Assembly (NCBI RefSeq): GCF_006345805.1
Contig: NC_043009.1
Span: 33,728,001-33,792,000, forward strand
Direction of reading: 5' to 3'
Source: Octopus sinensis
Lineage: Eukaryota
Length of the DNA: 64,000 bases
The notes beneath the pieces are model-generated. The model worked only from the letters and a program-made list of their open reading frames with translations, ran no database searches and was not told the origin of the DNA. The translations under genes and the position numbers were made by a program. Shown here one piece after another: positions 2,488 through 45,809 of this stretch; positions within the stretch are counted from its first letter, which is position 1; the number at the start of each line of letters is the position of its first letter.

Positions 2488-3619
2488 CTTTAATGATATG
2501 ATGAGTTAATTTATTACAGATAATTAATTAGAGAGTAATTAAAGTAAATGGAACTGTAGTAGAAGAATGAGATAACAGAAGAAAGAGGCAGAAAATAGGT
2601 CTTCATTACATCCACCAACACTGCTCAGAAACCAATTAAAGGATGGAGATGAAACAGAAAAGCCATAATCCAAACTGTTTTATCAAGAGTTCTTGGAATA
2701 TATTGTCAAGAATTATTCTACAATAAAATTATACAATGGTTTGAACAAATAACAGCACTAAACATTTAACACAATAATAATTCCTTCTGACTTCGGCACA
2801 GGACCAATTATTAACGAGTCACCAGGTAGACAAATGATTCAACTCAACTATCTACTCCAGGTAAACAGGTGAGACAATATTTAATATTGCTATCCTCACC
2901 CCCGCCCTGCACCAAATTGAAAAAACTGTGTGACTATAGAACCCACAATTCAGGAGAGGACTCAGTATATTTGGAATGCATTGTATATTAGAATTTACTA
3001 AGAACAATATCACCCACCCACACACCACCACTATCACCATACACACACCACACATACAGGTTGCCCCTGGCAACTGGGAACAAAACAAACTACAATAAAA
3101 CAAACAAATAAAAAAAAACATCATACAGAAAACTATTTCTTCCAGAAAAATGAGACACATGTTCAAGCAAAAATATCTCTGAAACAGGCCATTAGATAAA
3201 TCCTCCTTCATTCCCTAATGACGGCCCCAATGCAGCCAGGAAATAACAGCATACCAGGATCAAGTGGCTCCCACCTATGCCCTCCACCATGCTCATGATG
3301 GCAACCCTCAATGTGCCCCTGACACTATGGAGGCCACTGTCTGGTTTCATCCCTGATGATGCTCCAAAAGTAGAAATCTACAGGTTTGAAACCCAGAGAG
3401 CCAGGAGGGCACATGCTTTTATAGGTACATGATTACATGGTACTCGCAGAACTTCACAGACATGTGCTCTCCCTCCTCATCACATAGGATCAGCACCTGA
3501 GGTCTTTCTGGGCCATATGCCTGGTGGTAGACTTTGCCACTTTTGTGCCCTCATCACAGACATAAGAAAAAAAATAGGAATGAGATAATTGATAAATGAG
3601 AACCAATGAAAGAACTTAC

Positions 3620-3682
3620 TCCATCATACATGTCTTTGAGGTTGTCTCGTTCTTTAGTTAACACTTTTACATTAGCACGAAC
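3620..3682 (-). CDS. CEP135: CEP135 coding exon 11 (VRANVKVLTKERDNLKDMYDG)
   Basis: ttgtag acceptor and gtaagt donor; 63 nt, phase 0-0; NVK.LT.ERD motif. Confidence 0.92.
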
Positions 3683-4737
3683 CTACAACAAAATAAAAAT
3701 GTATTTGTAATAGCAAGAATGATGATGACGACGATGAAGAGGAGGAGGTGAAAGTATTGCGGCAAGAAGGTGCAAGTGTAGTTGTGTGGTAAGAGGTTTT
3801 GCTCCCCAACCACATGTTTCTAGGTTCAGTCCCACTACGTGGCACCTTGGGCAAGTGTCTTCTACAGTAACCAGAGGCCAACCAAAGCCTTCTGAATGGA
3901 TTTGGTAGATGGAAACCAAGAGAAGCCCATCATGTATATATATATATAAGAGAATAAAGGGTATGTACACCGCTATATATATATATAAAATACCAAATGG
4001 GACAAGAATGCAAAACATTCAGAAGACAATACAAAAAACACGGACGGGTCATTCGAAGCTTTCAATCTTCAGTCAAGAACCGGATCATCTTCGCAATTTT
4101 GGCTGATTAATCTTGATATATATATATATATATATATGAATGAATGTGTGTGTGTGTGAGTGTGTGTGAGTGAGTGAGTGCATGTCTATGTCTCATTGTC
4201 GTTATATTGCATGACAGTTGTAAATGAGTGTCACTGTCATACAAGCAGTGTCCTTTCCAATATTCTGTGAAAAACGTACCTGGCCATGGAGGAGAAATAT
4301 TAACTTGCTTAGAAACAGGTGATGGTTGGCAACAGGAAAGGCATCCAGCCCTAGAAAATATACCTCTACAAATTCCATCCAACCCATGCAAGCATGGAAA
4401 AATGGACATTATAATGATGACGATGAAAATGATGATGATGATGATGTGTGTGTATAGGTAAAGAAGCTTGCTTCCAAGCCATGTGGTTTTGAATTCAGTC
4501 CTACTGGATGGTATCTTGGGCAAGTGTCTTTTATTATAGACCTGGGACAACCAAAACCCTGATGAATTTGAAGAAGTTCATCGTGTGTGTGTGCGCACAC
4601 GTATGCGTGAGTGTGTCATGCTTACTGATAGTGACAAAGAATCTTTGTTTTGCAAGTTACTTGGAGTCCCTACCAATGCTGGTACCATGTAAAAAGCATC
4701 CAGTCCACAATGTAAAGTGTAGTTAGCATTTGGAAGG

Positions 4738-5230
4738 GCATTTGTAAACAGCCATCTTTCCCTTTTTCTGACAAGGATGTAGTCAATTTGACTAGTGTGT
4801 CTGCCAGAATGGAAGGTGACTAGGTGACTGGTAGGTTTCCTGAAGTTAGTATTGCAAACCATAAGATCATTTGCATCGCAGAACTCCAGCAGTCTGGTTC
4901 CCTCCTCATTGCGGGAACCAAAACCGTAGCCTCCATGTATGCCATGGAAGCCCCCTGTATGTTGTCCAACATGTCCATTGAAGTCACCAGCCACAAAGAG
5001 AAGATCCCTGTCATTTTTCAACGAGGTAGTCTGCAAGAGGGTGTCATGAGGAACCTAGCGGAACCTCCTCTTCACCTTACTTCTTGGAGGCAGCACAAAT
5101 CGACACATCTCCATTCAAGCATCTCAACAATCTCACCAGGCCTACCTTTCAGTGTGCCGACGTTGAGAGTGCCAAGCCTGAGGGTATGGGAGGTGTGGGC
5201 CTGTGAGACCCTGGGACGGGGGACAGCAGT
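4738..5230 (-). mobile_element. RTE-clade LINE, AP-endonuclease fragment with internal deletion
   Basis: TLNVGTLKG..GEIVEML....VDLCCLQEVR, then AGDFNGHVG...HGGYGFGSRNEEG.RLLEFC...NTNF.K...SQIDYIL (APE motifs). In-frame TGA and a missing central segment. Confidence 0.88.
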
Positions 5231-6228
5231 GTCATGTACCTGAAAAGAAAGCTTGCATTTGGCAGAATTCATAAACAAACAATAGCCTTCAATTCAACCT
5301 GCATACACTACACCATCATACTTATGCACTATATGATCACTACCTTACATAGGATATAAACCCTAAGTAGGGGTGGGGATGGCGTAAAGCCTTTAGAAGT
5401 GTTCATGGGAGACAACCAAAGGATGACAGAGGATAGGAACTTCCACAGGTGGAGGGGGTGGGAGGGCGGGTGTACTGCGAATTAGCAAATTTAGACGAGA
5501 GCATCTTCTGGATACATATTCTTTCAGCAGAGGTATTTAAAATTAAGTAGGGCAATCCGAGTGCGTGCGTTAGTTTATATACAGTGGGGTGGGGAGTCTT
5601 GGCGAAGCAAGTGGTAATCGAAAGAGAGAGAGAGACAGACATACAGACAGAGTGAGGCTGAGAGAGAGGGAGACAGAGTGAGGCAGAGAGAGAGAGAGGG
5701 AGTGCCAGAGTTGGTCAGAACACGAGGGAGAAAAATATTTTTGGGGATTGGGATTTGGGTACATTATTTAACGAAACAGCAAATTTAGATAATAGTAAAA
5801 TAGAATTGAAAAATCTTAGAATTTTTAGTCAGTCAATCTATGACAAAATTAGAGAAATAAGTGGTGGTGTGATAAACTTGAATAAATAAATATGTGGCGA
5901 TTAAAGGATATGTGTGAACTAAGGCTATCTTAAGGCAACAACGAGGAAGACGAAACTATTGAAACTATATTTACATGTTTACATGGTAATGAAATAGATA
6001 GAATAATGAAAAGAACTAATAAGGGGTTTATGATCTGAGCAGAAACAGAAGAGTAGATAAACAAGGTTGAAAGACAAAATTACTTACTTGATGATCATCT
6101 GAGATTCGTATCCTTTTGGCAGAGGTATTGGTTGTAAAACAATGCCTCAATAATATACTCCTCTGATCCATGTTAGCATGGCAAAATGAATGTAAACACA
6201 CACACACACACACGCATACAATTCTTAC

Positions 6229-6324
6229 CTCGTTCATATGACGTTCAAATTTCTCAAGCATGTCTTTCATCTTGTCCCTTTCTTCTCTTGCTTTCTGTAA
6301 TTCTTCATCATTGTAATTCTGGTT
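6229..6324 (-). CDS. CEP135: CEP135 coding exon 10 (NQNYNDEELQKAREERDKMKDMLEKFERHMNE)
   Basis: ttgttag acceptor and gtaaga donor; 96 nt, phase 0-0; ERD....MLE.FE..M motif. Confidence 0.92.
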
Positions 6325-8297: not shown

Positions 8298-8423
8298 CTT
8301 GTTAGATTGAGGACGTTTGGGACTCGTAGATCTCCTGATAGCTTTCAGCTGTTCGTATTCGGATTTAAAGTAATCCCGTTCTTGCTCCAACAACTGACAT
8401 ATTCGTTCGTAATGAGAAATTGT
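8298..8423 (-). CDS. CEP135: CEP135 coding exon 9 (TISHYERICQLLEQERDYFKSEYEQLKAIRRSTSPKRPQSNK)
   Basis: tttttag acceptor and gtaaga donor; 126 nt open frame, phase 0-0; ERDY motif. Confidence 0.85.
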
Positions 8424-8715
8424 CTAAAAATACAAATATACAAACAACTATTGGTATGTGGAAACACAACGAAACTTATACGTACATATACATATCTATA
8501 TAGAAATACACACGCACACACTAACAGATACACATTCATACACACACATACAGATATACACTGCTATATATGAAGTTAAGTTTTTTTTCTTTTCATTGTC
8601 GCGACTAAATTCCTGTATTTGTTCTGCACAAAAGAAATTCTCAGTTTTCAATAAAACATTAACCACAACACATTTTGAATGCTTTTCTCTCATCTGGGCC
8701 TTACAAAATCTACAA

Positions 8716-8936
8716 CCCTTTTGTTACTGTATTTCTTTTGAGATGCTCTGTGTTTCTTTCAATTACATTAAATATAACAAAGAATTTAGTAAAATAACTT
8801 AGTTATCATTCAGCTAGTGTTAGGAACATAAATTGTGATTCAGGTTTGGTGGAAGATTTTAATTCAAAACTTTAAAAAATAAGACATTTGTACTACAGAG
8901 CCAGAGCCAGTTTCAGCCGGGTTGGTAACAAAAGGG
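8716..8936. mobile_element. piggyBac-type MITE, family E copy 2
   Basis: CCCTTTTGTTAC...GTAACAAAAGGG TIRs; degenerate TTAA. Confidence 0.75.
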
Positions 8937-9599
8937 TTACATAAAGTAACACTCACATACATACACACACACACAATCATCATCATCGTCATCCTCCCAT
9001 TCAGCATCTTCCTATCAAACCTCGTTGCTTCTTCCCAAAACATTTCCAGTCTTCCCCTTCCACACATTCATTCCATCTTTATCATTTTATACTTTCCCAT
9101 CCAATTACTTTCCTCCATACACATCACCAACTCAAATCTTATACTCACACTACACCTCACTCCTCCTGTAGCCAGTCATTCTCTCTGTCATTCCACACCC
9201 AACAGAGCCTCCACCCTCCTCATTACTTTCCAACCGCCACATATCCTCCTCTTTCTCAACACCCACGTCCCTCAACAATCCAATATCATACACTATGCAC
9301 AAACATCATGAAATCTAACGATCAGTCGGCAAGGAAAGCTTTGTTTTGTTGTTGTTGTTGTTTTTTAATCCCATTCGACCAGGACCCAGCTGACCTCTGC
9401 GCAAAAGGCACTCCAGCCATGACCACTACCTCTTTGTATTTGAGTCTAAACAGCTCAATGTATCCTTTCTTTTTAAGACATCGGGTGTGAATTGAGGGGC
9501 GATTTCAGGGTGAGAGAAACAAATAAAAAAAAAAATGAAAGCCTGAGCGAAAAAATGCAAAGACGAAATTTCTAATTGAAGTTTAATTAGAAACAAAGT

Positions 9600-9817
9600 T
9601 CAAATTTTGAATGAAGTTTGACATTTGAAGGAAAGCAAGCGAAAGTAAACAAAGGGAGATGACTCTCATTTATGAAGTTAGGCGTGCGTGTGTGGATAGA
9701 GGGCGTTGTACAGATTACAAATAATATGGCGGGTAAACGTGAAAACGGACATTTCGATCATTGTCTGTTAATTATTAATTAATTATGAATGTTTGTTGGC
9801 TGCCGACACAAGTGAGT
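9600..9817 (+). promoter_or_regulatory. Putative RAD54L promoter and non-coding first exon
   Basis: CpG-enriched. CHR-like TTTGAAT (9606-9612), YY1-like AATATGGCG (9723-9731) overlapping E2F-like GGCGGGTAAA, and an A|GTGAGT donor at 9812. Confidence 0.55.
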
Positions 9818-9996
9818 AAATTTTCTCATATCAAACAACAAACTTTGTAAAAAAGAACATTTTCATTGTCGTCAACCATGTTTATTTTGAATATTCCCGA
9901 TTGTTAGACAAGTATTTACTGTCACATATATATATATATATATACACACACACATACAACATTGTATTGGTGATAATCTAGTCGGAGTGGTACAGG

Positions 9997-12213
9997 ATGC
10001 GGCGAAGTTTAGCCCCGAGTAAAGTATCAACCTGTAAAAGGAAATTCGATGATACTAACCATTTCACTCAGTTTAAAAAATGCCGACCTCTGGAAACTTC
10101 ATCACCAGCATCACAACGTCCGGCTTTAACAACCCTTGACAACAATAAATTCATATACACTACACCTAATCATTCTGAACATGAGGCCTTTATCCGCAAA
10201 ATCTTATCGAAGCCTTTCCGAATACCAATTCTAAATTATAAAGGCGCGACACTTTCCAGTAAAGCATTGGGAGTTCGTAGGCAAGGAACTCGAAATGCCC
10301 TGCACGACCCCGATGAAGAAGGAGCCTTGATTTTGTATTCTCCACCGGAACTCTCAGCTCATGAGCTGGTGAAAATGAACTCTGAAAAGTTGCCTGTCCA
10401 TGTAGTTGTTGACCCTTTGTTGTCCAAAGTGTTACGTCCTCATCAACGAGAAGGGGTTAAATTTATGTATGACTGTGTAACTGGACAGCAGATAGAAAAC
10501 AGTTACGGCTGTATAATGGCTGACGAAATGGGGTTAGGGAAAACGTTACAGTGTATCACATTAATGTGGACACTGCTTCGCCAGAGTCCAGACTGTTGTC
10601 CATTGATTAACAAAGCTGCCATTGTATCTCCCAGCAGTTTGGTCAAGAATTGGGCCAACGAAATCAATAAATGGTTGCCAGGAAAGATAAACCCGTTAGT
10701 GGTGGATTCGGGCAGTAAGAGTGAAATTGACCGCAATTTAAATCATTTCATGAGATCACAGGGTCACCGAATCACAAACAACGTGTTAATTATTTCCTAT
10801 GAGACATTCCGACTTCATGCAGAAGTACTTCACCGGGGTAGTGTAGGTCTGATCATCTGTGACGAAGGACATCGTCTCAAAAACTCAGAGAACCAAACCT
10901 ACCAAGCATTAGACAAACTTAATGTTCAGAAAAGACTGTTATTGTCTGGTACACCAATCCAGAACGATCTTTTGGAGTATTTCAGTTTAGTTCACTTTGT
11001 CAACAAAGGAGTTTTGGGAACTGCTAAAGAATTCAAGAAGAATTTTGAGAATCCTATTCTTCGAGGAAGGGATGCTGATGCTTCTGATGCTCAGCACCAA
11101 AAAGGTCAAGAAAAACTAAAAGAATTATTAGAAACAGTCAACAGATGTATTATTCGTCGTACACAAGAGCTACTAACAAAATATCTCCCTGTGAAAATTG
11201 AACAGGTTATCTGCTGTAATATGACGCCAATCCAAACTGAATTGTACAAACGGTTTGTGAAATCTAAAGCCGCTCAAGCTTTAATTGAAAACCGAGATGG
11301 CAAAATGACAGCAAGTTCGCTTGCAGCCATCACATCTTTGAAGAAACTGTGTAACCACCCTGATTTAATTTATGACAAATGCAGTCAACGGGTCGATGGC
11401 TTTGAAGACTGTCTTGAGGTGTTTCCTAGCAATTATAATCCAAAAATTTTGTTGCCAGAATTATCTGGTAAATTCCTTTTGTTAGATTATCTGCTGGCTG
11501 TGATAAAAGCCAACTCCAATGATAAAGTAGTGTTGGTTTCTAATTACACAAATACTTTAGACTTGTTTGAAAATTTATGTAAACAGAGAAAATATACCTG
11601 GGTCAGACTTGATGGAACAATGTCGGTGAAAAAACGAGCAAAAATTGTTGAAAAATTCAATGATCCACTCAGTACAGAATTTATTTTCATGCTCAGTAGC
11701 AAAGCTGGTGGGTGTGGCCTTAATCTCATTGGCGCTAATCGTTTAGTGATGTTTGATCCTGATTGGAATCCAGCCAACGACGATCAAGCTATGGCCAGAT
11801 GTTGGCGTGATGGACAAAAGAAGCAATGTTACATTTACAGACTTGTTGCCACTGGCTCTATTGAAGAAATGATCTTCCAGCGCCAAGCACACAAAAAGGC
11901 ATTAAGTAGTTGTGTGGTCGATAACGAAGATGTAGAGAGGCATTTTAGCCGGGAAGATTTAAGAAATTTGTTTCAACTGAATGAAAATACTAAGAGTGAC
12001 ACACATGATAAATTCAAATGCCGTCGATGTGTTAACAATATTCAAGTGAAAAGTCCACCTGAAGACTCTAATTGTAATTCAGATCTTTCGCTATGGCATC
12101 ATGGCATTGACAAAAAAGGAATTGTAGACACTATGCTAAAAATGGCTTGGCACCCAACTGTTAGTTTTATATTCTATCACAGGTCTCATGAGGAACAAAG
12201 AAAAACTGTCTAA
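9997..12213 (+). CDS. RAD54L: DNA repair and recombination protein RAD54-like (SNF2-family translocase), single-exon ORF, 738 aa
   Basis: N-terminal MRRSLAPS. Motif [70 protein letters not shown]-terminal Zn-binding HDKFKCRRC...WHH. No stops or frameshifts. Confidence 0.97.
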
Positions 12214-12252
12214 ATACTAAACTACTTCCACTCGTTTTTTTTTCTTGCCAAA

Positions 12253-12258
12253 AATAAA
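12253..12258 (+). terminator. AATAAA polyadenylation signal for RAD54L (second candidate at 12520-12525)
   Basis: 40 nt after the stop codon, followed by T-rich sequence. Confidence 0.55.
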
Positions 12259-12795
12259 CATTTATTTATTCAATGGTGTTCATTTTTGTTGTTGCAAAAC
12301 TTGAAAATATATTTTTTTAAATTTTGTTTGTTTGTTTCAACTTAATTAAATGTGAAGCCTGCAACCAAACCTCTGTAAAACAGAATTTTAGACAACCAGA
12401 ATCTCAAATTTGCCAGCATTCTTCTGAAGAGATTTTCCAAAATAGAATTCAACAGTCAGTCACAGCTAAAATCCTGAAAGGCTTCTCAGAAATAGTAAAA
12501 GATGTTATTACATAAACAAAATAAACGTTTTTTCCTTTCTTTTTCCCAAATTGTATCAAATGCTGAGTTCTTTCCACATTAAAAATAACAAAAACATCAA
12601 AACTTTGTAATACTTTCTCTTATTAGGAAATCATTTTAAAATTTCTGTAATCTTAACAATTTTTATTTAATGTCTGAAAGATATAAAATATGAATTTGGT
12701 CCAAATTATTTTGGATCTTTTGCCATGACTCAGACATTCTTATTTACATTCCTAAACAATTCTGAGCATAAGCTTAAACAATACAGTCAACTCAC

Positions 12796-13058
12796 CTTCT
12801 TGTCAAGTTTATCAGGAAGAGATATCATTTCTTTATTAGGACTTGCTGATCTGGATCTAGGAAGTCTAGTCTTTCGATTGCTGCTTCCACTCGGATCACT
12901 TTGTATCGTCTTTTGTAGACTGGTAGCTTGGTCACGGTAATAGTTTCTGTCTTCTTCAAGAGTTTTAATCAAACTTTCGACTCGAGCTGGAACTTTACCT
13001 TTTTTGGTTATGGTACCTCTGTGTTTTAGCTGCTCATTCTCTAAAATCAGTTCTTTCT
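12796..13058 (-). CDS. CEP135: CEP135 coding exon 8 (EKELILENEQLK...LEEDRNYYRDQ...PDKLDKK)
   Basis: atcag acceptor and gtgagt donor; 263 nt, phase 1-0. E(D/E)R.YY motif typical of CEP135. Confidence 0.9.
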
Positions 13059-14942
13059 CTGATATCAGAAAATTGTAAAAAAATAAAATGTAAACTCTTT
13101 TAAAGAATGGTGGAACTTGAAGCAAATAAAGCTATAAATAACAACCAAAAACATTTTTAAAAGAAGTCCCACAAGCAACCTTTAACTTCTATCCAAAATG
13201 TCTTAACTCAATGTAGATTTACTTGGAGCTTTATTTCCTTTGAAATTCACTCTTCCTATAAAGAATTATTTCACATTCTTAAAGTTCCTAAATCCTTATG
13301 ACATCAACAACAGAATGTAAATACTTTCACAAAAAAGAAAATTTCAGCATTGCAAGAAAAAAACCCATTTTTGGGGGGTTTTTTTCTTCACATATTTGTA
13401 TTTTAGACAAACAGATGACACAGACTCTGTATATAAAAATGTTTTGAGAAACATTGAAATTAAAGTCGATATGTTTTAATAATAACATTCATTAACAGTT
13501 TTCTTAATAGAGTGTTGCACTCACAAATTGCATGACCATGGTTTGATTTCCCAGATCAGGTGGTGCATTGAGATCTTGAGCAAAACTTTTCATTCCACGT
13601 TTGATATATGATCCTTTCGACACCTGACTTCTGTCATACAGTACACTTGTACAGGTAAGGTCAATTTGATGGAGAGAGACAGCTAAGGTGCAACACAAAT
13701 ATTTGATCAAAAATGATTTGTACTGGTTGTTCATCAACAAGTTGTGGAATAACCTTTCTCAGATTTGAGAAATTAATTATTAAGAGCTCAATTTTATATT
13801 GATTGTAACAATTTAATGCTGAAGGAGATATTTACAAGAATAATGGTAAACTTTTCTTGTATGGTTGTACAATATTTCCTGTGAATCATTTCACTGTTTT
13901 GGATCTGCTTCTTCTCAGTTTATAACTTGCCATCACAGAAACTTTACGATACATAAAAGATATCAGACGTTGTTGTTTAACCCTAGGTCGGCCAAGGCCA
14001 AGCAGATCCATGATCACAGGAATTGAGCAACATGGTCAAACAGTTTCAGCTGACATTTCCAAATCATCCAGGCAGAAGATAAGACTGTAAAAAAAGGTAG
14101 GGGGACAAGAAGCATTCTTAGGGAGAATGGTCCATTGGATGTGCCAATTTAGAATGAAAGGTTGAGTCCAAGTCAGCCACTGGACAGTGATAGCATCAAT
14201 TAGTATGAACTTGAGATATGACTGTGATGGTGATATAAAAAATAGTACATTCTGTAAAGTGGTTGGCATTTGGAAGGGTATCCAGCCATGGATACCCTTC
14301 GATAACAGACGGCTGGAGCCTTGTCAGCATCTGTCAAACCAGTATGGAAAATGGACGTTGATGATGATGATATATTATCAGTGGCAGAAGAGGGATGTTG
14401 GACCTCATATTTATTGTGACAATGTGATGAATTGGATATCCAAGCTATTAGGAGAGAAAAGGAAAAAAAGCTTCTATCCCCAAGGGTTTAAAATGAGAAA
14501 GCAACAAAGAAGATAATTCCAATCAATAGATCAAAATTTTTGGACAATGTATATATATAGCAAACTTGTGAAAGCAATGGACATGTTTCAATATCATTAA
14601 ACCTCTTTAGTGTCCTATTCACCTCAGTTGATAAAACTAAGAGATCTGTGAGTGATATATATATATACACACACACATACATACATGTGAGAGTATATAT
14701 ACAAATTTAGTGATACTCATTATGAATATGAGTGAACAATTAATCTACCATTGCGAGAACAACTTATCTTGATTCTCAACTGAAATTAATTTCGTCTTTA
14801 GCAAAAAAAAAAAAAAAAAAAAAAAAAGTTGAAATTTCATTAATAATTTTTAAATCAAATTAACGATTTCAGTTCATACCATCATCGAAAGAAGACATAA
14901 GTTGCTGTTGTAGCTTCTGATGATGATGATTTCTTAACTTAC

Positions 14943-15093
14943 CGTTGGCCGTTAGTTTATTCACTTTATGTATCATGCGACGTTTTTCTTCTTGAACTTT
15001 GTCCAGCAACATCTCCAGTTTCTTAAGGCTAGTTGTTTTATTGCTGTTCTGAGTCTCTGCATCTTCCAATTCTGTTTGTAGCTGTTCATTCTC
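14943..15093 (-). CDS. CEP135: CEP135 coding exon 7 (ENEQLQTELEDAETQ...IHKVNKLTAN)
   Basis: ttgtag acceptor and gtaagt donor; 151 nt, phase 0-1; fits the next exon's phase. Confidence 0.88.
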
Positions 15094-15875
15094 CTACAAT
15101 TTAAAATTATCGAAATATTTCAAATCTCCTACATCAAGGGGTCCAGTGTGTTTAGCTCTAGTTTCATGGCATAAAACAAAGATAAATCCCCTGGATATGA
15201 CACCAGTCTACCACAGGTAATTTCCCCAGGTGAGCTGGTACATATTTCTACAGACAGTGAGGTGAACTGTGCCAATGTGGAATAAAGAATTCTATCCAGG
15301 CATGACAAGTATCATTATGAAGTTTGCTTTGCAGCTATAGTTTCATGTTCAATTCCTCTGTACAGCACAACACCTTAGGCAAGTGAGATCTCGCAGGGCC
15401 TTGAAAGTGTAATGTGGAAGGCAGAAACTGAAGAATCTCATCAGAGGGTCCGTTCTTGTATTTGGATGGAAAATGTAATCCATTAGCCACTTTGAACTAT
15501 TTCTTCAACCCCAGCATGGCCGCAGCCTTCGGGCTGAAACATTTTTAAGGATTTAACTCATATATTTTGATGAGAAAAGAGGAGTTCCACCAGCATACCT
15601 TTATCAATCCTACATGAAGGGCCGCTGGCAAGCTGCACGTTTGTCAGGTTCTCAATGATACTTACCATTCAGCTAGATGTTTCAGATGACTATCAATCAC
15701 ATCAGTCTCACAAACTGCAGATCTTGACCACAACAAAGGCCACAGAAGAATCTGCCCTCATTTTTTCTAACAACAACCTTGGTTTTGAATATATTTTTTC
15801 AAGTTTTGCCAATCATAAAACAAAATGTAAAATTTATATTTGTTATAAACAAGAAACTTCTAATAAACTACTTAC

Positions 15876-15941
15876 AGACTTCAGCTGTGATATACAACGA
15901 TCTAAATCTTCAAGTTGTTGCCGTGATTTAAGTAATTCTTT
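15876..15941 (-). CDS. CEP135: CEP135 coding exon 6 (KELLKSRQQLEDLDRCISQLKS)
   Basis: ttccag acceptor and gtaagt donor; 66 nt, phase 0-0; coiled-coil. Confidence 0.85.
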
Positions 15942-17565
15942 CTGGAACCAAACCAAAACCAAAATTATAGAGTCGTATTTCTTAACATGGCTGATAATAA
16001 TTAGATATTTAGCATAGATTATCATTTTAATCTGATATTAGTAATTATCTTCTCCGACTCTTACATACCCACCACCACTGCCCTATACAAGTAATTACAA
16101 TCAGTGTAAATACTGATTGTTTTGAATATTAAATAATAATCATAAAAATAATGAACTTATTGCACACAGTGATCAGGTGCTGCACCACAACTCATCAGGA
16201 AATGTAACCATGAAAAAGTCTAAAGAAAAAAGAAATGGGGTGGAGGTGGGTCAGTTGGTGAATTGGAATTTGATGCTGAAAATATTATCAAATGAAAGAC
16301 TGTATGGCTATGTGTATCATGATATATTATTCAAAGAAATGTCTGTTCCTAGCAAAAGGAATTGCCAAGAAATGATAACTCTTTGTTATTTTTCATTAAT
16401 AGAAAGAAAAGAGATCTAAAAAGATGGAAATATTTCTATGTATTTATCTTTATTGCAGTTTCCTTTGAAATAGTTTGCCAGTGGCCGCCTCCTCTCTTCT
16501 TTCTACACATCAATGATATAAAAAGAATGAAGCTGTTCACATTCTTAACCTACAAAGAGGTTTCTGATTCAGGCTATATTGTACATAAATAGTTACTGTT
16601 CAATTAATGGTGGACCATCAAAAATACAAATTTGCAAATTAAACTATCCACCAAAGTCCTAACCTAATTCAGAACAGCTTTTTATAGCAACTTATCTATG
16701 ATATTAATTAGGAAAGGAAGCCAAACACATCTGTGCAGATCACTTAAGAAACCAGGAAACTGTTGGGAGACACCTTCCTCCATTTTTTAATACATAGAAA
16801 AAAATGTGTTTACACTCTTATTTAACCCACAGTGAAGCTTTATAATATTTATATTTATTTCAGTTCTTCTGATTTACACTGTGTTGGTCATGGATAGATA
16901 GTTTAGTTTTCTTTCCAGAGACAAAACCATGCTATAGTGTTATAGTGATCTTTGATTGAAAGTCTTATGACCAAAAGTATCACTCAGTTTCCTTGAGTTC
17001 CTCCATACCTTTTCTCACCTTCACTACATTTGTCAAAATTTTGTATGAGTCTGTGTACACTATCATAAAACCAACCAAACCAAACTAAACTGCACTGGAA
17101 CGAGTCTATGGAGACTTTCTAGAATATCAGTTTTGAAATCTCTATGTAGCAAATTTTTGCCACCTGCTTCAGATTCTTGTAAACATACAAAAAAGATTAC
17201 ATTTTCCACCCAAATACAGGCCACAAATTATTGATCTATTTGTATAGAAAAGTTCCCTATTGATTGTTCATCAATTTGTTGCTATTAGTTTGTACATTTG
17301 TCTTTTTAAATTCCAAATATATTTACACATATACAATATAATTAGCCTCATTTACAATAGAATAATTCATTCTCCTTCAAAAGATACTAACTAAAATGGC
17401 AAACCAATTTATTTTACTTCTAAACTCTTTTATTACCAAATGTTGATGTGACCATCACTAAAATTTCATTAGATTTTATTATTTACTTAAACCAAAATAA
17501 ATGTAGGTCCTAAATTATTTCATGCTTCTTTTTAAAGAGATAAACTGCCACAAGAATCTGCTTAC

Positions 17566-17781
17566 CTTTGCGACATTTATTTCAGAGTCAGCCGCTTTCA
17601 CTACATATTCTTTATCATTTTGCAACAGTTTAGCTTTACGATCAATATTTCTCATCTGTAGTTGGAGATCAGCATTCTTCTTATTCAACTTAAACATCTC
17701 ATCCTGGACATCATCTCTCTTCTCAGTGCTTTCATGAAGACGATGCTGTAATTCTCGGTTCTGTTCTTGCAAGATATCCAC
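17566..17781 (-). CDS. CEP135: CEP135 coding exon 5 (VDILQEQNRELQHRL...AADSEINVAK)
   Basis: Coiled-coil heptads continuing HLNIQ|VD.LQ; gtatcag acceptor and gtaagc donor; 216 nt, phase 0-0. Confidence 0.92.
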
Positions 17782-17802
17782 CTGATACAACAACATAAAA
17801 AA

Positions 17803-19492: not shown

Positions 19493-19608
19493 ACTATGTA
19501 AATATTGAAAGGAATTTCATGTCTGAAGATGAGGCTAATGAGTCTGAAAAATGATAATCTTATTAACATTAATTAATCTCATCCAATTAAATGTATACAA
19601 TTAAATAC

Positions 19609-19737
19609 CTGAATGTTAAGGTGAGAAATCATCTTTTCGTTGGCTCTGTTTTTGACCTCAAGGGCCAATGTATCTGATGGTCGGCCTCCACTCAACATTT
19701 TGTTTAATCTGTCTATTTCATCATCTCTTGCAGAAAC
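19609..19737 (-). CDS. CEP135: CEP135 coding exon 4 (VSARDDEIDRLNKMLSGGRPSDTLALEVKNRANEKMISHLNIQ)
   Basis: GGR..D.L.LE..N..NEK.I.HLNIQ motif; AG/GT ends; 129 nt, phase 0-0. Separated from exon 3 by a 22,968-bp intron. Confidence 0.95.
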
Positions 19738-27400: not shown

Positions 27401-28382
27401 AATTAAATCAAACTAAGGACCAAATAAGAAGGAGGTGGAGGGGACGAAAAAGTGGAGAAAATGAAAGCCTCCACCTCCTCTTGTTATTATTACTACTAAT
27501 ATGAGCCAAAAGGAGCCTCTATGTGGTCACTGCATCTGAAAGAAATAGCAGCTCAACTTTCTGCAAATCATAGCCTACAATCTTTAGAAGAATATGACAT
27601 GGAAATGTGATTCTGAGCTCCCAGCACAAAGGGAAAAATACAGGATGGTCATGGCTGGAATGCCTATGATTACAATCAACTTGATCAGGCTTAGCCTATG
27701 GTTAAACAATATACCTGCTGGTTTTATAATATTTTAAATCCATTTATTGATTTAAATCTCTAGTTTTTTTTGCAATGAGATGGTCTTCCCCATTGGGTAA
27801 CCCCTTAGTCGTCTCCCTTGCTTGCAAACATCAAGAAATTGATTTTTTTTAAAATTATCTCCCCTTTTTCTTTGAGAGTCACTAAGGATTGTCACTAGGC
27901 ATTTGTTTTCCTTTTCCAGTTATAAGGGAACAAATATTAATTATGAATTTATTTACGTACAATATTCAGTCCATCATCCTTTAACTTAATCATCCAATCT
28001 GAAGTCATTAGTCCATTTCAGTTATTTCCCTTGGCTCATATATCTTCATTATGATAATTTAATGTCTGTTTTCTGTGCTATCATGGGTTGGATGGTTTGA
28101 CAGGAGCTAGTAAGGCCAGGAACTGTACCAGATTCCATTGTCTGTTTTGGTCTGGTTTCTACAGCTGGATGCCCTTTGTAATGCCAACCATTTTACAGAA
28201 TATACTGGGTGCTTTTCCCGTGGCACCATCACCAGTGCCTTACATGTAGCACCATCACTAACAGGATCACAACATAGCTTGCAAGACAAAACCCCCTCAA
28301 CTAGAAGAGGGTTAGCTTTGTGTCATTTGAGAGATTAGAGGTACAGAGGGGTAGGGATAGGTACCTTGTTGTAGAGTAGAAA

Positions 28383-29508
28383 CATGGATACCCCAGGTGG
28401 AAAAGAAAGGCGAGGCATACCACAGGTAGAAAAGGTGAGGGCTACACCAGGTGGAAAAGAAAGGTGAGGGAGTGAGGTATGCCCCAGGTGGAAAAGAAAG
28501 GTGAGGGACAAAGGGATACTCCAGGTGGAAAAGAAAGGTGAGTGAGTAAGGGATAACCCAGGTGGAAGAGAAAGGTGAGAGAATGAGGGATACTCCAAGT
28601 GAAAAAGAAAGGTGAGAGAGTGAGGGATACCCCAGGTGAAAAAGAAAGGTGAGGGATACCCCAGGTGGAAAAGAAAGATGAGGGAGTGAGGGCAACACCA
28701 GGTAGAAAAGAAAGGGAAGGGAGTGAGGTATATTCCAGGTGTAAAAGAAAGGTGAGGGATACCCCTGGTGGAAAAGAAAGGTGAGTGAGTAAGGGATACC
28801 CCCGATGGAAAAGAAACGTGAGGGATACCCCAGGTGGAAAAGAAAGGTGAGGGATACCCCTGGTGGAAAAGAAAGGTGAGTGAGTAAGGGATACCCCAGA
28901 TGGAAAAGAAACGTGAGGGATACCCCAGGTGGAAAAGAAAGGTGAGGGAGTGTGGGATACTCCAGGTGGAAAAGAAAGGTGAGTAAGGGATACCCCAGAT
29001 GGAAAAGAAAGGTGAGGGAGTGAGGGATACCCCAGGTGGAAAAGAAAGGTGAGGGAATGAGGGCTACAACAGGTGGAAAAGAAAGGTGAGGGCTACACTA
29101 GGTGGAAAAGAAAGGTGAGAGAGTGAGGGATACCCCAGGTGAAAAAGAAAGGTGAGGGAGTGAGGAATACGCCAGGTGGAAAAGAAAGGTGAGGGAGTGA
29201 GGTATATTCCAGGTGTAAAAGAAAGGTGAGAGATACCCCCGGTGGAAAGGAAAGGTGAGGGATACTCCAGGTGGAAAAGAAAGGTGAGTAAGGGATACCC
29301 CAGATGGAAAAAAAAGATGAGGGAGTGAGGGATACCCCAGGTGGAAAAGAAAGGTGAGGGAGTGAGGGCTACACTAGGTGGAAAAGAAAGGTGAGAGAGT
29401 GAGGGATACACCAGGTGGAAAAGAAAGGTGAAGGAGTGAGGGGTACACCAGGTGGAAAAGAAAAGTGAGGGCATGAGGGATACTCCAGGTGGAAGAGAAA
29501 GGTGAGTA
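28383..29508. repeat. Purine-rich minisatellite, units 29/33/37 bp, about 30+ copies
   Basis: Core CCAGGTGGAAAAGAAAGGTGAG(GGAGTGAG)GGATAC; successive long units measured at 29337, 29374 and 29411. Confidence 0.95.
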
Positions 29509-31319
29509 AAGAGAGCAGGTAAGTGAGAGGGTAAGATAAAGAGGAAGATAGTGGGAGAGATAGTGGAAAAGCTGATATGGGAGATGCCCCTGGAGGACAT
29601 TGGGGTGAGGTGATACAGAGGTTTGGACTGGGTGAGTGGGCAGGATAGAGGTGGCTATAGCAATGACGGCATGAAATAGAGGAGAGGCTCAGGAGCAGAA
29701 GTTGCAGAAGATAAGTGAGGGCATTAAGGGTGATTAACAGATAAGCAAGGTGTTAATGATCGAGTACAGTGGGGGGAGGGGAGTAAAGCAGGAGGTGATT
29801 GGTGGAGATAATGGGAAATGGAAGTGGTTTGGGGTGGAAGAAAAAGGGTAACTGAGAAAGCAGGGGGTGTAGTATGAGCCTATTCTGCATTTTTGAAACA
29901 GTGGATCTCAAAGCAGATGATAAAGCTACATGTAAATACTGATAGAACGTTTGTCATATTTACAGGAGACATGGGTTCACGTTCCACGGGAAGCCTTCAA
30001 CTTTTTCTATCCAAGGTGGCTTTTAAGCTCGGTATTTTAACACGCTATTATTTACAGCTTTATCTTGTTTCAAGCTCCACTATTCCATAAAAAAAGAATT
30101 ATTTCACATTCTTTCAAAGTTTATAAGTGCTTTCAACAATTTTTGGATATGTTAATCACTGAACTGTGAAGCAACAAGTTGATTCCTGTTCTTTCTTGTT
30201 TCTGTAACCAAACAAGCAAACAGAAAGAAGCAGTTTATGAACGTTTATAAGATGCACAACATTATAAACTAGAATGAGGTCTCAACTTCATGGTCAGTAG
30301 TCCAGTGCATTAACCACTCATTGTGCTTTTCAACAAGGGATACTTCATGACAAGGGGTAGCGAACACACACATATACATGGTCAATGGCATTGAAAGAGC
30401 TCAGGCAACAGAGAGCAGCAAGGACTTTTTAGTCTTACAGAAGTACAAGGCAACCTCACCAATGCTGGTGCTAAGATAATATAATGTACCCAGTACACTA
30501 TTAAAAGTAATAGGCAAACAGAAACAAAATAAGGTTTAAGAGGGCCCTGAGGATGTGAGAACTTTTTTAGTGCGGTTAGAACTATGAAGAACACCTAGTC
30601 TGTAAAATGATTGGTGTTAAGAGGAGCAACCAGCCAAAAAGACATAAAAATCAAGTCAAAACTGGAAAATACAAGTGAGAAATGGTCCTGTAACCCATTT
30701 AGGAGTTGGGGTGAGTGCAGTTACTTGGAATAAAACTTAATTCAGACCTTGATGACCTAACCAACCCACACCGGTAGGGAAAGCTGACATCATCATGGTA
30801 AACACACACACATACACACAGAGCAGGCTTCTACAGTTCTTCTCAACCAACTTCGAAATTTCATACACCAGGTTTGAACCTACAAAGACAGGATTACAAA
30901 CCTAGCTTCTTAACCACACAGCTATAACCACATGATGTAAGTTATGACCAGAACAGTAGCCCACTGGGCAATGTGTGTGTTTCGTGTTTCTCACCACTCA
31001 GAGTTCAAAATCACACGGAAATCAATAAATTTATATCAAGTACAACAAATTAATGAATAATATACAGTAATATATTGGGGGTTAGATACTCCAATCCTTC
31101 TCTGTTCTCTCTTAAAATTAATCAAGTATCTTATTAACATATCAATTCATATTAAAAATATTTCGTTGTTAACATAGAAAAAAGAATTGTGTATGTATGT
31201 ATGTGTGTGTATGTGTGTATGTATGTATCTACACACCTACACCCAGTGCGACATACCAATAGTGGATACCTGCTTTCACACAAAATATATGCATGAATGT
31301 CTCTATGTACAGATGTGCG

Positions 31320-42668: not shown

Positions 42669-42705
42669 ACCAAATGTATCTACCAAAACCAGAGCAAATC
42701 AATAC

Positions 42706-42932
42706 CTGTTCCTTAAAAGCCTCCAATTTACTTTCCAATAATTCTTTGTTATCTTTCAATTCTGTAACTTGTTCTTCATTTTCTGCAATCCGTTTATCGG
42801 CGGTTTCCAGCATATCTGCTATATATGGATCAGGAACTGGAGGCGGAGATGGTAAATCAGGTTCTGCTGGAGGTATCAGGCAATCAACCACCATACGCTG
42901 CCGACGGAAGGGAATATTCTTCTTTTTGCCAC
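42706..42932 (-). CDS. CEP135: CEP135 coding exon 3 (GGKKKNIPFRRQRM...DPYIADMLETADKRI...AFKEQ)
   Basis: FRRQRM and DPYIAD.L..AD.RI motifs; ttttag acceptor and gtattg donor; 227 nt, phase 1-0. Confidence 0.95.
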
Positions 42933-43297
42933 CTAAAAACCAGAAGAAAGCAAAGTTGTACACAGGACTTCCAGACAGAGAGAAGAAGTTGTGTCTTGTA
43001 CTCGTCTTAGTCATTGGACTGCAGCCATGCTGGGGCACCACCTTCAAGGGTTTACTCAGAAAAATTGAATCCAGGACTTATTTTTTTAAGTATGGTATTT
43101 ATTTTGTCAGTCTCTTTTGCAGAACACTGCTAAGTTACAAGGATGTAAACAAACCAACACCGGATGTCTAGATGTCAGGCAGTGGTGGGAGACAAACACA
43201 AACACATACACACACAAATATGTGTGTGTGTGTGTGTATTATATTTATATATACATACATGTATGTATGTGTATATATATATATGGGGGGGGTATAT

Positions 43298-44086: not shown

Positions 44087-44376
44087 ATATATACATATAT
44101 ATTCTTATATATATATATATATATATATATATGAGTCTTTGATTATGTCTGGTAGCATGGTAGCATAAACAGGTCTGTTGAATTACATTTCTTTATATCA
44201 AAAACACAATTTAGTTATTTGAGAAACAGGATCAATAGAATAAGTTGGAGTTAATATGTGTAATTAAAACCCTTGGAAATAGGTGTTGTAGAATGGCCAC
44301 AGACCAATAACTGGAAACATTTAAAAGATTACATGTACAAGATTACATATATAAAGATGTATAAAAATCCACTGAC

Positions 44377-44544
44377 CTGGAGTTTGAACCACAGCATGGA
44401 AGTTTTTCTCTTGCAGTTGTTGAATTCTGTCTGATTTTTCTTTAGATTCTTTCTCCAATAACTTTATCTTATGTAAATATTGATTGTTTAAGAACTTTAT
44501 ATCTGCAAGCGTGTGCTCAGATTTTCGCAGGGAAGACTTGAGAT
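44377..44544 (-). CDS. CEP135: CEP135 coding exon 2 (DLKSSLRKSEHTLADIKFLNNQYLHKIKLLEKESKEKSDRIQQLQEKNFHAVVQTPG)
   Basis: Not in the ORF track; found by hand. ttacag acceptor and gtcagt donor; 168 nt, phase 1-1. KFLNNQY and RIQQLQEKN.HAVVQTPG are typical CEP135 motifs. Confidence 0.95.
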
Positions 44545-45499
44545 CTGTAAAGCAAAATATAGATATAACAATCTAAAATATAATTTCATTCTACATTTAA
44601 GTGGCACTACTATCTCTAAAAATAACTGCTTCAGTGAGATGTCAACCATTGTGCATCCATCTGGACAGTGGCCATACTTGATATGTAAAGGGGGAGGTAG
44701 GAATACCAGAAGGTACACCTAATGTAAAGTATGGCTACACAAAATTCCTGACAGGCTGACAGAGAACTTCAAATATAGCAGATCACCATGTTGCACACAT
44801 ATGGTTGTGATGCATGTACCTGGTGTACCCTTATCAGACAGGTAGTCATGATGGGTATACTGGGTTTCATATATTTTACCCCAGTGTCACTTTGATGGAA
44901 TGCACTACTCTCATTCAATAATATTAATAATAATATGACAAAGGACCGAGATACTGGGCACCTTGCTGTACTCAAGAAGACCCAATACTCTACGGCAGAG
45001 GTGTTAAAGTAACTCCCCTCAGTGAGGAGGACTACCCTACAAGACTCCTGTGCTGGTGCCATATAAAAGGCACTCATGCCAGTGCAATGTACAAATCGCT
45101 TGAGCCAGTGCCATGTAAGAGCACCCAGTAAACAACTGTAAAGCGGTTAGCATTAGGAAGAGCATCCAGCCGTAGAAACCGAACTAAATCAGACAGGAAC
45201 CTGATGCAGCTCTTCTGCTGACCAGCTCTGGACAAACCATTCAAACCTATACCAGCAGGGAAAGTGGACATTAAATAATGATGATAACGATAATGATGAT
45301 GAAGGTCAGAAAATTTGGTGGGAGAGCTTTGTCAATTACATCACCTCAACTGGTTCAAATAAATACCAGTTGAGTACTGGGGTTAAGGTAAATGGCTTTC
45401 TCTTCCTTCAAAATGGTTGGCCTTCTGCCAAAATTAGAAATAGTAATAACAATAATAATAATAATGATGATAATAACTGAGTTAACTATTTGTACAAAC

Positions 45500-45809
45500 C
45501 TTTCATAGCAGTATTATTTTCTTCTGTTGCTTTAAGAAGTTTCAAATTTAAAGCATTGTTCTCTTTAACCAATTTAGCATTATCATTTTTATAGGAGTCA
45601 ACAATTGTTGGATCCTCTGCATCACTTTTTCTGGAGTGTTCTACTTTGATCTTACGAAGATCTTCAATTGTTTTCAACAGGTCCACAAACAACCGTTCAA
45701 CCAATGGCAAAGATTCAATTCCAAGAGAATCCTTATAACCAAGCTGTTCCAACCGCCGCCGCAGATTCTTCAACTTCTCAGATGTATTCATTGTTTCTTT
45801 TGATGACAT
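45500..45809 (-). CDS. CEP135: Centrosomal protein of 135 kDa, first coding exon (MSSKETMNTSEKLKNLRRRLEQLGY...NTAMK)
   Basis: RRRLEQLGYKDSLGIESLPLVERLFVDL matches the conserved CEP135/Bld10 N-terminus (R.RLDQLGY...L..E.LPLVE.LF.DL). Acceptor ttccag at 45841-45842, so the exon starts at 45840 with ATG at 45809. Donor GT at 45499-45498; 310 nt, ends phase 1. Confidence 0.93.

Follow-up and report, generated by a model that had tools for sequence, protein, structure and literature searches.

A single-exon RAD54L gene lying antisense in a CEP135 intron of Octopus sinensis: probably an old retrogene that took the place of its multi-exon parent

How did a core gene of homologous recombination come to lie, as a single uninterrupted coding frame, within an intron of a centriole gene? 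The question is raised by a stretch of 64,000 nucleotides of the Octopus sinensis genome (RefSeq assembly GCF_006345805.1, contig NC_043009.1, positions 33,728,001 to 33,792,000 of the forward strand), here termed the window and numbered from its first base. In it the gene for RAD54L, the Snf2-type double-stranded DNA translocase that partners RAD51 in homologous recombination, is located on the opposite strand inside the gene for CEP135. The explanation that we regard as probable is that the window RAD54L is an old retrogene, inserted into the CEP135 intron, that replaced a multi-exon parental gene since lost.

The RAD54L coding sequence occupies positions 9997-12213 of the plus strand as a single exon of 2217 nucleotides, comprising 738 codons and a stop with no interruption. 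In Pfam, the 738-residue protein matches SNF2-rel_dom (PF00176, 1e-77) and Helicase_C (PF00271, 1.4e-22), and its score for Rad54_N (PF08658) is 27.0 bits, the cut-off being 27.5. Conservation with named RAD54L orthologues extends to the N-terminus (MRRSLAPS) and to residues 62-81. Against the zebrafish Rad54 core (PDB 1z3i), residues 91-735 give a practically gapless match of 1073 bits; the second-best PDB family, ERCC6, reaches 274 bits. The best protein matches are all RAD54-like by name (65-97% identity), and a word search of proteins found matches named RAD54-like, of 65-73% identity, in molluscs, brachiopods, echinoderms and vertebrates. By these comparisons the reading frame is a full RAD54L orthologue, and not RAD54B, ERCC6 or ATRX.

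Conservation of the protein was examined in an alignment of 18 animals, made up of 13 non-cephalopods and five cephalopod sequences. The columns of the Walker A motif GLGKT (G179-T183), of DEGH (D289-H292) and of motif VI, QAMAR..R (Q597-R604), are invariant throughout. The window protein retains 331 of the 340 columns (97%) that are invariant among the 13 non-cephalopod animals, and six of its nine departures are common to all five cephalopod sequences. Between three octopod genera, RAD54L identity is 92-97%. Such values point to strong constraint at the protein level, and from this conservation the window gene is predicted to be the functional RAD54L of the genome.

Three other views of the gene were considered and rejected. 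Conservation rules out a pseudogene. A horizontal origin from a parasite is ruled out by the tree, which places the window protein within the molluscs, inside a cephalopod clade with 100% support. An assembly artefact is ruled out by the 72-Mb contig and by conservation of the protein in two other chromosome-scale octopod assemblies.

The host intron that holds the entire RAD54L unit is intron 8 of CEP135 (8424-12795, minus strand; 4372 bp, phase 0), defined by its GT/AG ends and by collinear flanking exons. Read from the sequence of the minus strand, the donor is AAG/GTGAGT, with the first intron base at 12795, and the acceptor is ttttag/ACA, with the last intron base at 8424. Coding exons 8 (12796-13058) and 9 (8298-8423), both on the minus strand, thus abut the intron directly; their limits were taken from these splice sites and agree with collinear orthologues.

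Identification of the host is based on several comparisons, in which the CEP135 exons were handled singly. Coding exon 1 (45495-45809, minus strand) encodes the Bld10/CEP135 N-terminal domain, as indicated by tblastn and by its matches to the Bld10/CEP135 N-terminal structures 9qzc (1.5e-6), 5fcm (3e-5) and 7bji (1.7e-4), and three of its relatives carry the JGI name 'CEP135'. In a large protein search, exon 8 matched mostly exon fragments that had been called as open reading frames, and no named protein; a further match was a 707-residue Solemya protein (P0178) whose molluscan, Lingula and vertebrate relatives bear the name 'centrosomal protein of 135 kDa' or a TSGA10-like one. Pfam, run on the individual exons, returned coiled-coil noise only. 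When CEP135 of Mya, Tegillarca, Lingula and Mytilus was compared with the window by tblastn, 13 ordered minus-strand blocks were obtained, running from 45.8 to 0.15 kb and matching CEP135 residues 1-669 (Mya) or 1-680 (Lingula), with the RAD54L-bearing intron between the eighth and ninth blocks. By homology and exon order, the host is the CEP135/Bld10 orthologue, and RAD54L is antisense between its coding exons 8 and 9. An earlier, sequence-only reading of the locus had described an uninterrupted 2217-nt RAD54 frame placed antisense in a 4,372-bp CEP135 intron between these exons; the frame is borne out by the open reading frame itself, Pfam, PDB 1z3i and the alignment, and the nesting by the splice sites and the 13 collinear blocks.

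Comparison with other lophotrochozoans indicates that this nesting is not ancestral: in each of six outgroups, the contig with RAD54L differs in size from that with CEP135. The contigs that carry RAD54L and CEP135 are, respectively, of 133.1 and 97.1 Mb in Mytilus galloprovincialis, 142.4 and 99.9 Mb in Mytilus californianus, 151.1 and 133.5 Mb in Solemya velum, 26.5 and 43.2 Mb in Pomacea canaliculata, and 2.82 and 3.89 Mb in Nucella lapillus. In Lingula anatina, RAD54L is on a contig of 0.456 Mb and CEP135 on contigs of 0.076 and 1.53 Mb.

The outgroup genes also appear to be interrupted. RAD54L isoforms of a chiton differ by an internal block of 23 amino acids at residue 451 and those of Mytilus differ at the N-terminus, which implies coding introns in both. 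The Logan and ENA proteins used here are treated as plain open reading frame calls because the tails of P0161, P0166, P0228 and P0229 run across splice sites into introns. In fragments of this kind from mytilid genomes (P0137 and P0140), homology sets in at octopus codon 672, where Arg replaces Lys. This is the outcome to be expected if a phase-2 intron splits the Lys codon and its acceptor AG is translated along with the third codon base. A dicyemid-like copy (locus L008 on contig C9495, see below) has a phase-2 GT..AG intron, at 2711-2729 of that locus, in the codon that matches octopus K672. RAD54L probably had this codon-672 phase-2 intron early in spiralian history, and the octopus reading frame has no counterpart of it. 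Many coding exons are also found in vertebrate RAD54L.

A complete loss of coding introns, combined with an antisense move into an unrelated intron, is most simply explained by one retroposition, after which the parent was lost. By this account RAD54L mRNA was reverse-transcribed, which would leave the coding sequence as a single exon, and the retrocopy would have been inserted antisense into a CEP135 intron 8 that was then about 1.4 kb long. The insertion would have taken place in an ancestor that octopods share with one or more further lineages of cephalopods. The retrocopy would have gained a promoter, or brought one with it, of which a CpG-rich patch (about 9.6-10.0 kb) is the present mark, and would use an AATAAA just past its stop; the original multi-exon RAD54L elsewhere in the genome would then have been lost. 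The dimensions of the host are compatible with such an insertion: other CEP135 introns are mostly about 0.8-2.5 kb, with one exception of 23 kb, so that the 4.37 kb of intron 8 agrees with an insert of about 2.9 kb in an intron once about 1.4 kb long. A position in an intron, antisense to the host, is what retained retrocopies typically show.

Evidence for an independent RAD54L transcription unit is circumstantial. The observed/expected ratio of CpG is 1.57 at 9600-9800, compared with 0.34 across the window, and a GGCGGG (E2F-like) site is present at 9728. From composition, a putative promoter and 5' untranslated region can be assigned to 9600-9996 of the plus strand, containing the CpG-rich patch, the GGCGGG site and a microsatellite. 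Downstream on the same strand, a first AATAAA is located at 12253-12258, 40 nt past the RAD54L stop, and a second at 12520-12525. The promoter-like block and the AATAAA that were attributed to RAD54L in the sequence-only reading are both visible, the former as the CpG-rich patch, for which promoter function is putative. More generally, the RNA intermediate, the promoter and the transcription of RAD54L are features that we infer. The microsatellite is a (TA)n(CA)n tract at 9923-9958, 40 nt upstream of the start codon; CA-rich tracts also occur at 8477-8566 and 8940-8983 of the same CEP135 intron.

Several considerations weigh against retroposition with replacement, and the first concerns its hallmarks. 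No A-run of six or more was found from the RAD54L stop to 12800, and no target-site duplication was found flanking RAD54L, where only chance-level short direct repeats occur; the absence of a visible poly(A) remnant or duplication had been noted from the sequence earlier, and the A-run and repeat searches agree. With these hallmarks gone, the RNA intermediate is deduced from the full loss of introns and the relocation. Their absence is as expected for an old event. Secondly, a candidate splice pair is present upstream of the ATG, with a donor-like AAG/GTGAGT at 9812-9820 and an acceptor-like ACAG/G at 9991-9997. The donor-like site at 9815 and the acceptor-like CAG at 9994-9996 could bound a 5'-untranslated intron of about 180 nt, in which case the gene would not be strictly intronless. 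Thirdly, intron loss is not unique to this locus. A scan of metagenomes for RAD54L yielded mainly fungal genes and transcript-like contigs, and the sole informative sequence (L027; JGI contig Ga0100406_1211484, 2079-5101), which is metazoan and unplaced, has a single intron, about 1 kb long and located after residue ~85, with residues 88-657 encoded in one exon; RAD54L has thus turned intron-poor independently elsewhere. There are, in addition, two matters of method: gene structure in O. bimaculoides, in Argonauta and in the outgroup molluscs was deduced from isoforms, open reading frame fragments and the sizes of the encoding contigs, and the search of the octopus assembly described below used a stricter first look that may miss weak exons.

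These same features bear on a different history, in which a DNA-level rearrangement carried RAD54L into the CEP135 intron and the introns were lost separately, by stepwise deletion or by cDNA recombination, with no retroposition at all. Such a course would leave neither a poly(A) tail nor a target-site duplication, it has an independent parallel in the intron-poor L027, and the 3'-biased loss that accompanies cDNA recombination would suit a surviving 5'-untranslated intron. It requires two rare events, however, namely the entry of a whole multi-exon gene into an intron of about 1.4 kb and then the loss of every coding intron, in a genome that has retained numerous long introns in its genes (CEP135 has 12 in the window). 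A single retroposition accounts for both the move and the intron loss, and the antisense placement is the one typical of retained retrocopies. Rearrangement is accordingly considered improbable, though it is the most credible of the alternatives to a retrogene that replaced its parent.

Replacement by a retrogene further predicts that the parental gene is gone. The 2.72-Gb assembly (13,516 contigs) was searched with the whole RAD54L protein and with its RAD54-specific N- and C-terminal parts, matches to these ends being taken at E <= 0.01. The window locus was recovered at 100% identity, and no further cephalopod-type RAD54L was found in the assembly with the whole protein or with either end. 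Apart from the window locus, RAD54-specific matches were confined to the unplaced contigs C9495 and C12386/C12597; the rest are generic Snf2 motifs of other members. It might still be argued that the window gene is an extra retrocopy, and that a multi-exon parental RAD54L persists but is missing from the assembly or was overlooked, given the stricter first look of the search and the division of the assembly into so many contigs. We consider this quite unlikely, as cephalopod-type exons are lacking elsewhere even when the RAD54-specific ends are used, and as the annotated RAD54L of two other octopods falls in the same 90% cluster as the window protein. Nor was an additional divergent cephalopod RAD54L lineage found among the top protein matches, which hold two cephalopod clusters only, and the high retention of universally invariant residues (97%) likewise speaks against an extra copy.

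The remaining matches are three compact RAD54-like copies, at C9495:167781-170080, C12386:5775-7731 and C12597:74096-76052, the last two having the same score, identity and span. They place about 680 codons in about 2.3 kb with many changes of frame, and the junctions are GT..AG introns of 19-28 nt. Their identity is about 40-45% to each bilaterian RAD54L tested, with cephalopods not favoured. Dicyema japonicum, collected from Octopus sinensis, has extremely short introns in a genome of 67.5 Mb, the GC content being 36.7% (PMC6736024). The tiny introns, the absence of cephalopod affinity and the gene structure of D. japonicum together lead us to read the compact copies as contamination, that is, as probably being DNA of a dicyemid parasite and not the octopus parental gene. 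To take them instead as the ancestral octopus RAD54L, with the window gene a newcomer, one could appeal to their presence in the same assembly, to their possession of introns, and to the codon-672 phase-2 intron at its ancestral position. Against this, introns of 19-28 nt contrast with the kilobases usual in the octopus genome, the identity to all bilaterians is similarly low with no leaning to cephalopods, and the contigs are unplaced and have features that fit the dicyemid parasite of the host, so that this assignment seems very improbable indeed. It is worth emphasizing that the assembly holds parasite-like contigs that may be mistaken for host paralogues.

Four further Snf2-type matches of equal score and span were observed on small contigs (C279:1049-2578, C279:18853-20382, C8595:732-2261 and C8896:119942-121471); their frames are of about 716 amino acids, with one TAA per match, and are 31% identical to RAD54L residues 124-643.

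With regard to the retrogene and its parent, the sequence-only reading had proposed that the copy may have replaced the parental locus, and had advised a search of the same genome for a multi-exon paralogue; outgroups already intronless at this position would, on that reading, have contradicted a recent retroposition. The genome yields no other cephalopod-type copy, only the compact dicyemid-like ones, and the outgroups have RAD54L at a different location and with coding introns; the reading is supported on each of these grounds.

The age of the event can be approached through the cephalopod relatives. At 90% identity or more, the window protein clusters with the RAD54L proteins annotated in O. 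bimaculoides (741 amino acids) and Argonauta hians (740 amino acids). A second cephalopod cluster, from Logan and ENA, shows 79-82% identity and is sister to the octopods with 100% support in the Shimodaira-Hasegawa-like approximate likelihood ratio test (SH-aLRT); it probably represents a decapodiform lineage. The cephalopod stem, at 0.31, is the longest internal mollusc branch of the RAD54L tree. Within the sister cluster, one ENA sequence (P0132) is a full-length, uninterrupted RAD54L open reading frame of 741 amino acids from a contig reported to be of 425,475 bp. Another ENA sequence (P0229) matches CEP135 exon 1 (62% identity, E 1e-29), and its contig is likewise reported as 425,475 bp. 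As it is very unlikely that two contigs would share this size by chance, the two sequences are taken to be linked: the sister lineage, too, has CEP135 linked to a RAD54L coding sequence without introns. Linkage together with an uninterrupted frame in the sister lineage indicates that the event predates that split, in agreement with the old event suggested earlier from the sequence. A more specific proposal, that the replacement predates the octopod/decapodiform split and so is over 200 million years old, and that the nesting has since been kept by selection through shared proliferation- or germline-linked chromatin and regulation, is advanced as a tentative possibility that we would not expect to hold in full.

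Genes nested in introns are classically exemplified by F8A in intron 22 of F8, and by OMG, EVI2A and EVI2B, which are antisense in an intron of NF1. The octopus arrangement resembles these in that a small guest gene, read from the other strand, is enclosed entirely by a host intron and has its own (here putative) promoter. It differs in that the guest is an essential and ancient housekeeping repair gene, of which the nested copy would be the only one. Relative to vertebrate RAD54L (PDB 1z3i), the octopus protein is alike in the 1073-bit match of residues 91-735, in its Snf2 ATPase lobes and in all invariant motifs, but the octopus gene has a single coding exon and its product shares six cephalopod-specific changes at otherwise invariant positions.

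Retrogene replacement is itself a known kind of event, although documented cases are few (PMC5803294, PMC3548309). They include SYCP1 of amphioxus (Garstang & Ferrier 2018, PMC5803294) and the 'orphan' retrogenes of humans (Ciomborowska et al. 2013, PMC3548309). As in those systems, the octopus would have a single-coding-exon copy of a many-exon gene, at a new locus, with the parent gone and the ancestral function carried by the copy; like SYCP1, RAD54L acts in recombination and meiosis. The position is different from that of amphioxus SYCP1, which is intergenic beside a gene cluster, whereas RAD54L is antisense in the intron of an unrelated gene. Unlike the orphan retrogenes described before, the present example is from a cephalopod lineage and is known from sequence, its transcription and any co-opted regulation being at most presumed. 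Literature searches found no reports on cephalopod RAD54, and the RAD54L case is apparently unreported.

An entire animal lineage that relies, for a core homologous-recombination factor, on a relocated, processed copy within a centriole gene would be an unusual case. If this is true across the coleoids, the insertion would be a rare genomic character of use for dating and phylogeny, and a natural experiment in how a retrocopy, placed within a host gene with cell-cycle ties of its own, comes under regulation that suits the cell cycle. It would also be a caution for annotation pipelines that are prone to call single-exon copies pseudogenes.

The other coding exons of CEP135, all on the minus strand, were placed by tblastn and their limits are approximate. 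Upstream of the RAD54L intron they are exon 2 (44375-44554), exon 3 (42703-42957), exon 4 (19606-19737), exon 5 (17563-17784), exon 6 (15867-15956) and exon 7 (14938-15093). Downstream of it are exon 10 (6223-6321), exon 11 (3605-3682), exon 12 (2305-2490) and exon 13 (155-232), after which the gene runs on beyond the left end of the window. The intron that separates exons 10 and 11 holds, at 4581-5036 of the minus strand, an endonuclease fragment from a non-LTR (long terminal repeat) retroelement (Exo_endo_phos_2, 1e-4, below the Pfam cut-off), a sign that retroelement machinery was once active at the CEP135 locus and a point in favour of retroposition. The 23-kb intron 3 contains, at 28300-29600, a repetitive block with long, repeated minus-strand pseudo-open reading frames and a GC skew of 0.35-0.59, which is probably a minisatellite.

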